Shown in pieces: positions 17,401-34,394 of a stretch of 64,000 nt of DNA. This stretch comes from Iphione sp. A-MEVVRFRX5. Lineage: Eukaryota. A program made the translations under genes and the position numbers. The notes beneath the pieces are model-generated. The model searched no databases and was not told the origin of the DNA. It saw only the letters and a program-made list of their open reading frames with translations. Each line of letters starts with the position of its first letter. The stretch's first letter is position 1. Location of the stretch: contig OZ320314.1 in assembly GCA_976226885.1 (NCBI GenBank), positions 34,162,001 to 34,226,000 on the forward strand, read 5' to 3'.

Positions 17401-20400
17401 CCAAGAGGTAATGTTCTCTATAGGCTTTCTGGTAGCACATGTAAATACCATTTACTACCGAGAGGTACCGACAGTTTTTACTGGACGAAAACATAGTACT
17501 GCTTAAATTATACCATGAGCAAAATAGAGCTAGTTCACACGACCTTACTCCAGAGGAGTGACATCGTCTTTCGTTCTAATGTGAAAGCTATGACCTATTT
17601 ACGTCATGTATATGGTTTACGAGTCAACAAAAATGGACCGAGCAGTATTTATATACTATGAAAACTCACCTGTAGTTTCCAAGGTAAACTCCATCTGGAT
17701 TTAGCATTGGCACTATCTTAAAGACAAGATGGTCTCGCAGGAGCTTTGCAATTGGATGATTGCTTATAAGAAAATCCATGATGCCTGGTGGGGGAAACGG
17801 TGGAAGTTAATAGTTTTTACAAATTAAGCAGACAGTTTGTCGACAATCTTAATTTTTACTGTTTTATGTTAAATTTACAGTGAGCAAGTCAGGTTATTTG
17901 GCTATATTTGCACTGCCAAGAGCTATGCTATCGTTGCAAACATACATACCGTAAAATATAAATCATTTTTTAACGGTTTAAGAAAATAAGAGTCACAAAC
18001 GCTAATAATAGTGCAAAGCCTCAGGAAATGGTTAATTTACCTTGGCAGACATAGGATGAAGGAGTTTCACCAGGATGAACACGCGCTGTCAGAAAAATGA
18101 TTTTCTGCACTTTGTCTTCATTTTCCAAGTTTTCAGGGTTAGTGATGGTTATCAAGTCTAGTCTCCTCTGTTGCTGCAAAACCAAGAAACGTTTCTCTGA
18201 AGCCACACTCACATTACAGACGGGAGCATTATGGCCTACAGTTTTACCTCGAAAAAGGTTATTTAACCTGGCTTCTCTCTTTTCTTTCGTCTAAGTTAAG
18301 TTGGTCCATGCCAAATAATATTTAACCTGAGACAGATGCTTCTCTCGAATCGAAAAGGCAAGACACATGACACTTACCACGCTCAAACAGAGAAGCTCCC
18401 TCTGAAAATAATCCATGTTTCTTTTTTCAAGTGAATCCAGGTAGTTTTGCAAGCGGGTGTAGGAATAAGGATAGCAGTAGCTGAACTGGTACACATCATC
18501 TTCCCGGTCAAAGCAGAAGACAAAGGACATGACGTAGTTCTTCCTGTGGTCTGGACATCGATAGTAGTATACATGTTTTGGAGGGATCCGCACCCTGTTG
18601 AAGACAAGGAAACACAAGATGAAGCAGTTTGAGTGGTGGTTTACTGTTTGCTTGATAGTCAACTTGTTCGTGATTATGCCATAAATCATAACAACCGTGC
18701 ATTTAAATGAAATGATTTATTCTCTTCAGATGACTACTGCTGTTATCGGATCGTTCCTGCAAGACTTGAACCATCAACAAGTCCTAACGTATGCGACGGG
18801 CCTGCCAGCCTCCGCCGAGCTCTACCTGAAGGGAGCATCAGCCTTCACCGGTTACACACTGCCTGCGGCCACCCTACCTGACACAACCGGTCACGCACAG
18901 ATGAGCACAATCTACGACACACTGTCGATGCAGCCCATGCAGCCCATGCACGCCACCTCAGTTGCATCAGCGGCAGCATTGGCCGGCCATCACTTGATCA
19001 CAGATCCAACTCAACACATGCTCAGTCAAACCGTCACCACACCGTCAGACCATTCAGCTGCACACCACTCGGTAGCAGCTCTGGCAGCGCAACATCAATT
19101 CGAACAGGTAAGTGCATGATGCGCATGTAATGAAACGCTTCAGCAGGGTAGTGGCAACAGACACAATGGGCGGGGGCTGGTGGGGGGGGGGGGGGGCAGG
19201 AAGCTGGGCGGGAGATGCCCTGGGAATGAACCAGAAACGTTTCATTTTGTTGATGTCTAACTTCTATAATTGGGACTAGGATGAGTACCGTTGCATCCAA
19301 CTTGAAACTGGACGACTAAGCCATGCAACTCAGCCTTTGATGGAAATGTAAGGCGCAGTTTCGCATTATATTTTCGAGGTTTTTACCTTTTGTAGGGTTC
19401 ATGTTCTTGTTCAGTCGTCATGGCTGAAATCTGGACTGGCAATGACAAAAAGCTGACCTGTCCTGTTTCAAGACAGGTCTTGGTTTAACAGCATTTTCAA
19501 TGTTTGAGGCATCGTACCGATGAAACCCGGGGACCAAAATAGTAGGCCTATTTCTCTTCAAGTCCCAATAGTTCATTTTTCCCCATCGCAGTTGTTGGGC
19601 GTGGTGGTTAGAAGCCTAGATAGAAAAGTATATCTTTCAATGGGATCTAGGCAATAGTTTCTAGTTCCTCTACCCGACACTAGGAGGCTGTGGTGTGGAT
19701 TGGTAGTTGGATGGGAAACCCGGATTGTAACCCTCCCACGTATAAGTGATAACTAGCTGTTTCGTCGGGACACGTCTGGGTTAGAACTGGCCACTTCAAC
19801 AAGTGTAGTGCAAGTGTGAATGTCCTGATGTGTGATATCTGTATAGATCTCCAGAATGTATGAACACGCGTTTTTTTTTGTGAAGTTAACAACTGAAATC
19901 GACTTCTGCTGTAGTCTACATAGAATGGTGGTGAAAATCTCTCTCAAAAATAGCTACTTTGACCACAAATGAAACCGTTTTCTCAACATCTTTTCATTCG
20001 GTAACTAGACAAAATGTGATGAGGTAAGGCATGTAACAGATCCACTTGATCCATGGAGGAGGTGACAAGCCTCTTCACTATATAGGATAGCCGTATTTCT
20101 CATATGATCTCCGGCCCTCAGCCCTCTTAGTGAAAACCAATAGGCTTCCATCAATCTAATTGGTTTTTAGAAAAACGAATGCTCCGACCACAAGTGAACA
20201 AGTTCCCCAACTACAGACCTAGGCACAGGATGCAGGAAATGAGACTGACACCCAGATCTAGGCTCAGTTTCTCAGTGTTAACTTCATCATCAGGACTTAT
20301 TTATGCTAGGACCCTAACTTTCCACACACTGGTGTTAGTATAAAATGTAGTGAAGCATATTAGATGGAAGGGTTGGTATCTCTCATGTACAACTCATGAG

Positions 20401-23400
20401 GCTAAGCTCAGGTGCAGTCGTTCAGGTGTCATCCTGCAAAGACAGGGAAAGACATAGCTTCCCTGTGGCTGGAAAACAGCTTCTCGGCGGGACTCTGCAG
20501 TAGCCTATTTGTGAAAAAATAGTTTATTTTTATACGCATTACTGGGAATATGAGAAAAAAAGGTGGGAAGCCGACGGTACTAGAAGTATCTAGAGTAGGA
20601 AGTTCCCTGCCGATTGGCCTGGCAGGTAGGTACACAGTTTCGGCTGTCTCATCAGACGCTTTAGATAACAAGAGAGGAGGAACTTGTGTGGTCACCAATG
20701 GATAGTTGAACGAGCAAGTAGGCCTAACGAGAAGTCTGTCAATTGGCTTATTCATTATGTTATTTTTACTTCATGGGTGGCTAGTCTCTCTAGTTTGGTG
20801 GGGAGATATGTTCACATGTTGATGATATGTCTACTGTTAGATGAAAGCCACGGGAAATGTCAGACATGTCAAAAAATTGATATGGGAAGGATCTATTCTC
20901 CAAAGTCTGCATAGCAATTTAGTTCCCATCAGTAGGCCTATAGCATTGAGAACAAATGATAATAGACCTACGATTTTTGTGTTACAGTGACATATATTTT
21001 ACCCAACTGGGTGGGGCGTGGCCTTTTGCCATAGTGGGCCTAACTAACACTCTGGGCATGGGTATTGAAAGGCCTACCTTGCCAAACAGCTTCCACATGG
21101 CAGAACTCACAAACAGAAGATAGAGGGTTTGATTTCTCCATCCACTAAAGGAAAGCTATAATAGAAGAAAATGGTTTGGCATGTGTGTAGCTAACATTAA
21201 GGATTACTTAAGGATCACTCGCTCAAATTTTGAGATTTTTATGGAGAAGTTACAGAATGACAGCAGTAGAAAGTTGGAGCTTTTATAGTAGAATTTAGTG
21301 CTGACTGTCACTTGAATGTCGAGGCAGCATGTAAGTAGGTCATATTCACACACAACATCTAGTATCAATGGGTAGGTCCTTCGGGTTAGAAGTCTCTGGT
21401 TCCGTTTATGTTCGACATATATAAGTTCTTTTGGTCTGTTGGGGTGGCTGTGGGTTCCATAGACCTAAGTGCGTGTAGGATGTAATGAATTCAGGCTAAT
21501 GCGATTCCAGCCATGGTGGTCAGAATTGAAATGGCTACTTCATGCTCTAGTCTACTGTGAATGATACCACAGAATTGAGCTGATATGTCCCTTCAATCTG
21601 TTCTTGATTTGGGTGACATGCAATATACATGTACACTGCACATATAGACTTGCTGTCTTATTCAAATCAACTTATCAAGGTATCAAGTTCCATGACATTT
21701 TAGATTCAAGTTATTTCATTGAAATGATCTCCCTGGTTAAGTACAGCATGAAGTTGTAAATCAGCTTTAATGGTAAATTGACCTAAACAAGGCAAATATG
21801 GTTGATGAGTGTTGTAACACAGAAAGGAAGAGATTTTTAAGTGGTGCACTACCTACTTTGTTTGTTTACAAATTGGCGTAGGGAAATACACACTTAATTC
21901 CTTAAGAGCTTTCCCCATGGCCAGAAGTAGGAACTTTCAGGCAACGTTTCATATATGTAGTGTAATCATAGGTATTTACGTTCAATATATTTTATCTAAA
22001 CTCTAACAGTGCATGGTCATTTTGGCCATATTCAGTAATGCAAAAATATAGAAAATGCACTTCCTGCCATATTATATGGCAATATAATAATAGTCACAAA
22101 ATAAAATTGTTAAAAAATGTTAACTGGGATATGATTTGATACAAAAGAACCTAAAAGTAGGATTCCCAGAACTGTCCCATAGCCCTGATTGAATGGATGC
22201 ATATATATGTACATGCATGTAAAAACTCTACATGAATGCATGATCTTTTCATTTATAACATTAAGGCGATTTTTTTTACATAATACTTAAATCTGCTTTT
22301 TTTTTATTAAAACAATTACGACTCGAAAGGCACATACATGTACTTTTGTATATCCTTCCCTACTAATTATTTAAAAAAAAAAACCCTTACTACTAATTAA
22401 TTATCTCGCACATCTAGTATTTGGCGCCAGCACCTTTGCGAACCTGGTGCAGTGCCAACAATGTAGCTAGAGATGGCCTGGGAGTGGCGACGTTCTGTCC
22501 GTCTTAAACCTACTGCCTGCTTTTGATTGGCTCCTCAGAACGTATAAAAGAGCCACAATCGACATCATCGATCATTTCCTTTGTGCAACGAGTATGTTAT
22601 ATTAGATATTTAACGGCTAGCTGCATCTTCTTCTTCGTTAGTTTTATATCTGACTTAATTTTCAGGATATTTGATCCGTTTCCTTGGTGATAATATTTTG
22701 ATTCACGAGTCGAATAGTTTAATAGTCGTTGTTATTCAAGAAACACATAAAAATGATGGACATAGTGGATAGTGTTCGGGGACAGCTTGACGGCTGGACA
22801 CGTCTTCAGGAGCAGTCATCTCTATCTTTGAAGGTAAAGGCTAGTAAATTTCTGTTGAACAATCGTTTTTCCCCCTGAGAGTTCATAATATGAAATTAAA
22901 GAGATAAGGTGAATTTTTACAAACGATTCCAGCAACGATGTGACGGAACGTATGAAAAATCCAGTGGAAAAAGGCACGATGAAAAGTCCATGATTTTACT
23001 TTGAAGCTTAGGTTGTTTCCCCATTTCGGGCTTTGAAGACATTGCCTTTAAAAAAAATCATAATGAAGGTTAGCTTACCATTTTGGCCTGCTGGAAGATT
23101 TTACCATCGGTGACATTCCGTCGCGGTATAACGACTTTGTTTTACTGAAGTTGACCACATTGAAGATAACCCTCTGAAAACAGAAATGTTTCAAGAAAAG
23201 TTGCAATTTAGCTAAAACACACAAAAAAGAACCTCAAATAACCGCTTCAGAAGCAAAAGATTTCAAGACGTGCCACTGATTTTGCACTGACATGACATCA
23301 TCACGCTGCGACATTTCCCGCGATAAAAGGTTCCGTTTTCAAGACGCGCTTTAAACGGTCTTGATCCGTACGCATATACGAAATTAGAGCTGATATATGT

Positions 23401-34153: not shown

Positions 34154-34394
34154 ATAACTACCGCCAGCACCAACACAGAGTCCAGCATGGAAACTGCACC
34201 GACTAACAACTCTGTACAGCAAAATGGTGGAACCAACCACACTAATATCCCTACGGGGACGACTCCAGAAGACAGCAAAACTAACCTCATCGTTAACTAC
34301 CTACCGCAGGGTATGACACAACAAGAAATCCTGGAATTGTTCTCTAGCATAGGTGAAGTGGAAAGTTGTAAGCTGATCCGAGACAAAACCACAG
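34154..34394 (+). CDS. elav: ELAV shared exon: N-terminus plus first half of RRM1 ([17 protein letters not shown]...[40 protein letters not shown])
   Basis: ttgttctcaacag| acceptor (phase 0, open upstream of the Met at 34187), G|gtgagt donor. Confidence 0.95.

Follow-up and report, generated by a model that had tools for sequence, protein, structure and literature searches.

Candidate far-upstream exons of elav nested antisense in an intron of CCP6/AGBL4 in Iphione

The window analysed here is a stretch of 64,000 nucleotides from Iphione sp. A-MEVVRFRX5 (assembly GCA_976226885.1, contig OZ320314.1, positions 34,162,001 to 34,226,000 of the forward strand), and all coordinates are counted from its first letter. 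Two genes lie head-to-head in it: an orthologue of the tubulin-deglutamylase gene CCP6/AGBL4 on the minus strand, with its ATG at 27446, and a neuronal elav gene on the plus strand, whose last coding exon ends near 54319. Intron 4 of CCP6 (18595-23078), which on the minus strand separates exon 5 from exon 4, contains two plus-strand exons, hereafter exon A and exon B, and these are probably far-upstream alternative starts of elav. A first-pass annotation had assigned coordinates to the AGBL4 start, intron 4, the two nested exons and the ELAV acceptor at 34154, and had named the two genes. All of the coordinates proved correct when the sequence was read again, and both identities were upheld by the searches described below. 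The features are listed in Table 1.

The minus-strand gene encodes both the CCP N-terminal and the M14 domains. Pepdidase_M14_N was found on exon 3 and Peptidase_M14 on the exons at 17669-17806 and 18024-18290, with scores that were computed per exon and are around or below cutoffs set for whole proteins. The database matches of exon 5 that carry names are all cytosolic carboxypeptidase 6, with identities of 73-83% to vertebrate sequences, and by these names, rather than by a tree, the gene is CCP6/AGBL4 and not one of CCP1-5. For the plus-strand gene, TIGR01661 (ELAV_HUD_SF, ELAV/HuD) was the best model in each of five exons. The exons match colinear positions of this model (1-41, 41-78, 77-128, 126-179, and 259-349), and a rough sum over the five gives approximately 457 bits against a cutoff of 279. 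Together with an RRM_1 match on exon 2 and the RRM order of ELAV proteins (RRM1, RRM2, hinge, RRM3), these model matches identify the gene as ELAV/Hu. The main comparison was made with the closest relative, SP2, whose loci (L002 and L003) lie on one contig in ENA and are colinear with positions 12029-41777 of the window. All coding exons of CCP6 and elav show strongly 3-periodic mismatches against SP2, and in SP2 exons A and B likewise lie between CCP6 exons 5 and 4.

Comparison among species indicates that exon A is a real protein-coding exon under purifying selection in its plus-strand frame. A word-indexed search of 5.8 billion clustered proteins, which has a length filter that full-length isoforms with exon A could escape, returned relatives in two other species, namely SP2 and the species of locus L001. 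Both are genomic open reading frames (ORFs), and the two amino-acid identities are 69% and 64%. Exon lengths in the three species are 378, 390, and 369 nt, each a multiple of 3, and pairwise differences at codon positions 1/2/3 are biased towards the third position (24/17/57, 38/16/62, and 34/17/60). The exon is preceded by a pyrimidine tract and CAG, and its ATG stands right at the acceptor (AG/ATG, the slash marking the exon boundary), an arrangement preserved in all three species. Its donor, CAG/GTAAGT, is a perfect consensus and the highest-scoring GT in the window. Both relatives have the same layout, with the pyrimidine tract and CAG/ATGACTACT at the start and GAACAG/GT at the end.

The first 40 residues of the exon A peptide are nearly invariant, and the remainder is a variable tract rich in His, Ala, Thr, and Gln; this otherwise highly variable Gln-rich tail is terminated by an invariant ...EQ/GT. 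The peptide is probably disordered, given the mean predicted local distance difference test (pLDDT) score of 47 in an AlphaFold2 model. Exon A had no match in Pfam and nothing usable came from Atlas, and when 1.84 billion cluster representatives were searched with a profile, only the exon's own cluster, a genomic ORF, was retrieved. A spacer of 135 bp (18595-18729) separates exon A from CCP6 exon 5 and accommodates two opposed 3' splice sites, one for the minus-strand exon 5 and one for the plus-strand exon A.

The acceptor of exon A implies that another exon precedes it in the transcript. The segment at 12029-12208, within the CCP6 gene body, probably supplies both a promoter and a noncoding leader. 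It begins with a promoter-like block in which CCAAT boxes occur in both orientations, one direct and one inverted, and approximately 100 nt beyond this block lies a donor. SP2 shares the motif of this donor, GCTCTGAG/GTAAG, and the last exon base is 12208. The donor scored 6.0, which places it at the 99.8th percentile among all GT sites of the window, and the candidate leader is without an ATG in the window copy. Among eight fetched loci, the promoter and donor were found solely in SP2, the only one in which they co-occur with exon A. The alternative that 12029-12208 is a coding exon of CCP6 was rejected, as the segment has no codon periodicity ([6,7,5]) and its minus-strand ORF is unlike a carboxypeptidase.

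Exon B would be a first exon, with a start site placed approximately 30 nt past a TATA box that reads TATAAAAG in the window and is aligned with TAAAAGAG in SP2. Its coding part is 31 codons long in SP2, where the ATGATGGAC start, the reading frame, and the AAG/GTAA donor are preserved and all indels are multiples of 3. Within the first 15 codons the two species differ by three synonymous and two conservative changes. The donor of exon B ranks at the 98.5th percentile of GT sites in the window, and the exon ends 245 bp from CCP6 exon 4. It is detectable by tblastn only and was missed by blastn. Thus, both of the nested exons that had been called on the plus strand are well formed: the one at 18730-19107 by its conservation, its lengths in multiples of 3, its third-position-biased change and its phase-0 donor, and the one at about 22574-22833 by the TATA box, ATG, frame, and phase-0 donor kept in the same intron of SP2.

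The acceptor at 34154 opens elav exon 2 and the start of RRM1 in phase 0, with 11 codons ahead of an internal Met. In these codons the sole change relative to SP2 is GCC to GCT, and six of the eight codons that are changed relative to SP3, another of the relatives compared, are synonymous. Conservation collapses immediately upstream of the CAG acceptor, and the motif Q/IT..STNTE at the start of the exon is kept in genomic ORFs of many species. By this pattern of substitution the segment ahead of the internal Met is translated, and elav must therefore receive a phase-0 coding first exon. One such exon, 1P, lies nearby in the intergenic region. It comprises 13 codons (MDVDTPFSQADLW) and follows a conserved block that has a cyclic AMP response element (CRE, TGACGTCA) and a TATA-like element (TTTTATAG). 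Its three differences from SP2 are all synonymous and at third positions, and its donor is preserved. Exon 1P, which lies to the right of both 27500 and the CCP6 start, is probably the main start of elav. Orthologues of 1P, A, and B were not found in SP3, SP5, or SP6.

Table 1 Features of the CCP6-elav locus in the window. Triplets in brackets give the codon periodicity of mismatches.
Feature	Position	Strand	Remarks
Promoter-like block, direct and inverted CCAAT box; candidate promoter of exon A inside the CCP6 gene body	12029-12112	+	78.6% identical to SP2; no codon periodicity [6,7,5]
Candidate noncoding leader exon	12113-12208	+	Ends in conserved donor GAG/GTAAGA; putative start site
CCP6/AGBL4 exon 5	18378-18594	-	94.8% amino-acid identity to SP2; [33,1,7]
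Exon A, 126-codon coding exon, phase 0/0	18730-19107	+	Conserved in two other species; [41,11,7] against SP2
TATA box before exon B	22544-22551	+	TATAAAAG; TAAAAGAG at the SP2 aligned position
Exon B, candidate first exon	22575-22833	+	Coding 22753-22833, 27 codons; phase-0 donor AAG/GTAAAG
CCP6/AGBL4 exon 4	23079-23173	-	87% amino-acid identity to SP2; [1,2,17]
CCP6 exon 3, conserved coding core (Pepdidase_M14_N)	26038-26174	-	[4,19,1]
CCP6 exon 2, conserved coding core	26353-26489	-	[29,1,1]
CCP6 exon 1, coding part	27422-27446	-	ATG at 27446; conserved in SP2, SP3, and SP5
Intergenic noncoding block, two GCCATTTT (YY1-like) motifs	27900-28247		Identity 88% to SP2 (350 bp) and 75% to SP5; no periodicity
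Second intergenic noncoding block	29993-30241		82.5% identical to SP2, approximately 70% to SP5; no codon periodicity
Proximal elav promoter and 5' untranslated region block, CRE and TATA-like element	32386-32541	+	85.9% identical to SP2
Proximal elav first coding exon 1P	32542-32580	+	13 codons; phase-0 donor TGG/GTCAGT; conserved in SP2
elav exon 2, RRM1 start, shared phase-0 acceptor	34154-34394	+	[1,29,2]; 11 codons before the internal Met coding

We then considered what exons A and B may splice to. Counted from the ATG, the lengths of exon A (378 nt), exon B (81 nt), and 1P (39 nt) each place the donor in phase 0, which is also the phase of the exon 2 acceptor. The donors of A and B accordingly fit the ELAV acceptor at 34154, as had been proposed in the first-pass annotation, with matching phases and an open frame at the junction. 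Between 19108 and 34153, codon periodicity in conserved blocks is limited to the minus-strand exons of CCP6, and the only further plus-strand match by tblastn is exon B, although this conservation screen could overlook short or unconserved exons. With compatible phases and no further conserved coding exon of the plus strand in the interval, splicing of A and B to elav exon 2 appears to be the most economical reading, to which we assign a probability of roughly 0.5. Two other connections were evaluated as well. Splicing of exon A to exon B was judged unlikely, for the only acceptor that keeps the frame is a weak AAG at 22740 whose position is not conserved in SP2. Splicing of A or B into the 1P region was rejected, since the candidate acceptor before the 1P ATG is out of frame.

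If A and B do splice to exon 2, elav would have three or more alternative 5' ends, all joined to this exon at 34154 in phase 0, a proposal which carries the same even odds. The first would be the intergenic exon 1P, the second the TATA-driven exon B within intron 4 of CCP6/AGBL4, and the third exon A, an internal exon in the same intron that is probably fed from 12029-12208. They would give rise to ELAV proteins with differing N-termini, to which exon A would contribute an extension of 126 residues, probably disordered, with a conserved head of 40 residues. As CCP6 is on the opposite strand, pre-mRNAs from both distal starts would be antisense to CCP6 exons 4-1 and to the CCP6 promoter, and a pre-mRNA that starts at the leader would additionally cross CCP6 exons 5 to about 9. 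The transcript with exon A, if the leader is used, would thus begin approximately 22 kb upstream of exon 2 and be antisense to at least nine CCP6 exons. The comparisons establish the exons, their conservation, their coding signature, and their phases, whereas the transcription of A and B, their splice partner, and any interference or antisense pairing with CCP6 are inferred. A more speculative extension, which we consider possible but doubtful, is that an orphan exon restricted to one lineage provides ELAV with an optional disordered N-terminal module of 126 residues from a CCAAT-box promoter in CCP6, and that its pre-mRNA, antisense to the CCP6 promoter and at least nine exons, makes long ELAV and the deglutamylase mutually exclusive in cis. 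Two neuronal or ciliary genes would then have become coupled recently in evolution.

Several observations weigh against elav as the destination of exons A and B. Exon 1P by itself suffices for the open frame of exon 2, and A and B are therefore not required for it. No protein that joins exon A to another exon was present in the databases searched, nor did these yield a spliced protein fragment from a close relative for A or B. A stop codon is reached within 3-4 codons of the putative donor of exon A in each of the three species, in the L001 species this donor is weak (GTACCC, score -0.3), and in SP2 an AATAAA lies 21 nt past that stop. Exon A could, on these grounds, end a small separate gene. 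In favour of elav, the part of the exon B peptide that is conserved resembles 1P (MD-VD...Q-D-W); this likeness ties for the top among 632 ATG-to-GT candidates (shuffle p 0.007) and gives a weak hint that exon B may be a paralogue of the elav first exon, but it is short and one unrelated candidate ties with it.

In one alternative, exon A and the leader at 12.1 kb form a small gene of their own, which lies within CCP6 on the opposite strand and is unrelated to elav, whether or not exon B belongs to elav. In such a gene the leader would splice to 18730 and coding would continue past 19107 to the stop at 19117-19119, yielding an orphan, disordered protein of approximately 129 residues. Apart from the stop, the weak L001 donor, and the SP2 AATAAA, it is favoured by the gene callers, which read the through-running ORFs (P0001 and P0002) as whole genes, and the conserved GAACAGGT at the end of the exon could merely encode Glu-Gln-Val. 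However, the window copy has a perfect consensus donor and neither AATAAA nor ATTAAA for 1.5 kb after the exon, no conserved 3' untranslated region follows exon A, and the residues after the Val are not conserved. The invariant ...EQ/GT that closes the variable Gln-rich tail is also what a splice site would predict. We regard a separate gene as unlikely, yet as a serious rival.

A further alternative is that A, B, or both are transcribed and spliced to unconserved downstream exons, either as another fast-evolving nested transcript or as an upstream transcript that is non-productive, targeted by nonsense-mediated decay, or regulatory, so that no ELAV isoforms would result. That blastn missed exon B itself illustrates how short or fast-evolving exons can elude a conservation screen, and the databases searched hold no protein model containing exon A. 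On the other hand, the coding nature of exon A is clear, its frame is open in phase 0 at either end, and elav exon 2 is the only conserved phase-0 coding acceptor downstream. On balance, this alternative seems distinctly improbable.

The linkage of the two genes extends beyond the window. CCP6 and elav are also head-to-head in SP2, in SP3 (approximately 8.2 kb from CCP6 exon 1 to elav exon 2), and in SP5 (approximately 5.9 kb), and gene tables place CCP6 exon 5 and elav exon 2 approximately 14 kb apart on one contig in SP4. SP3 and SP5 show that the linkage is independent of the nested exons. In SP3 (L004/L005), CCP6 exons 5 and 4 occupy 1284-1511 and 1647-1754, leaving an intron 4 of 135 bp (L005 1512-1646) that contains neither exon A nor exon B, and both exons are likewise missing from the intron 4 of SP5 (904 bp; L006/L008) and SP6 (1052 bp; L007). 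Only the window species and SP2 have both nested exons, and exon A was furthermore found in the L001 species; as far as these loci show, the nesting is lineage-specific. The length of CCP6 intron 4 varies between 135 bp and 4.5 kb in these species (the SP2 copy is at about 9650-12960 of L002), and a large intron 4 is seen in exactly two species, the window species and SP2, which are the ones with exons A and B.

In human, AGBL4 and ELAVL4 are presumably adjacent at 1p33. Agbl4 and Elavl4 are adjacent in teleosts (PMC10516590), and the CCP6-ELAV linkage looks old in the genomes compared. The first-pass annotation had suggested that the linkage may be ancient and that the nested exons could be what keeps the pair together. 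The first suggestion agrees with the retention of the pair in relatives and its neighbourhood in teleosts. The second is not supported: the linkage persists without nesting in SP3 and SP5, and the nested exons therefore cannot be a general constraint. That elav exons and promoters embedded in AGBL4 have bound the two genes from invertebrates to man is thus very improbable, for all that the pair is head-to-head in the window, SP2, SP3, and SP5, on one contig in SP4, and neighbouring in teleosts (PMC10516590), since exons A and B are absent from the intron 4 of SP3, SP5, and SP6, exon A was retrieved from only two other species among the 5.8 billion clustered proteins, and the conserved noncoding blocks at 27900-28247 and 29993-30241 would fit shared or interdigitated regulatory DNA, which is the more usual explanation. 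Beyond the report of fish neighbours (PMC10516590), we found no paper that describes AGBL4-ELAVL4 as an ancient microsynteny or a bidirectional promoter.

The proposed arrangement of elav has a counterpart in mammals. HuD/ELAVL4 has eight alternative exon 1 variants that are spliced to exon 2, most of them with an in-frame Met, and the vertebrate variants, E1a-E1c and others, come from Bronicki et al. 2012 (reviewed in PMC3708524). As in HuD/ELAVL4, several far-upstream first exons with their own promoters would lead to a common exon 2, possibly with alternative N-termini (PMC3708524). The Iphione locus differs in that two candidate 5' exons lie inside the opposite-strand neighbour and that one of them would add 126 residues instead of a few. 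Divergent overlapping antisense gene pairs and intronic nesting on opposite strands are a common class in animals. A distal promoter of one gene within an intron of its divergent neighbour, with putative antisense overlap of the primary transcripts, would fit this class.

Drosophila ELAV has an N-terminal domain rich in Ala and Gln. Exon A, as a candidate, would similarly put a long low-complexity region before RRM1, but it has no detectable sequence similarity to that domain, is limited to a few related species, and would be optional, not constitutive. The locus also resembles microsyntenies held by regulatory blocks or bidirectional promoters, in that CCP6 and ELAV are head-to-head in several relatives and neighbours in vertebrates, with strongly conserved noncoding blocks between them. 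If the junctions of A and B with exon 2 are confirmed, an old head-to-head pair of CCP6/AGBL4 and ELAV would be seen to become interleaved, with one gene gaining distal promoters and a new coding exon within the introns of the other, and one invertebrate lineage would have acquired a new optional N-terminal module of ELAV.

The conserved blocks that lack codon periodicity against SP2 are located at 12029-12112, 27900-28247, 28620-28694, 29034-29135, 29993-30241, 30963-31013, and 33461-33545. The block at 27900-28247, found approximately 450 bp before the CCP6 ATG on its upstream side, includes long invariant stretches and exceeds any coding exon in identity; it is possibly a shared promoter, or a distal promoter or leader of elav. 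Noncoding blocks at 27981-28240 and 29935-30143 are shared with SP5. These intergenic blocks are better candidates than the nested exons for holding the CCP6-elav pair together. The proximal promoter of CCP6 (approximately 27490-27512) combines the octamer ATTTGCAT with the CRE TGACGTCA, both no more than 70 bp from the ATG, and the same CRE occurs in the proximal promoter of elav. Adjoining the conserved intergenic blocks is a GCN-rich trinucleotide tract (30477-30840), several frames of which, on either strand, read as long poly-Ala ORFs; it is probably low-complexity noncoding DNA. Within elav, a segment of 446 bp (41333-41777) that covers one copy of a mutually exclusive pair of RRM2 exons and its flanking intron is 93% identical to SP2 and has no codon periodicity. 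As the conservation runs across both exon and intron, the intronic sequence that would control splicing is as conserved as the exon.

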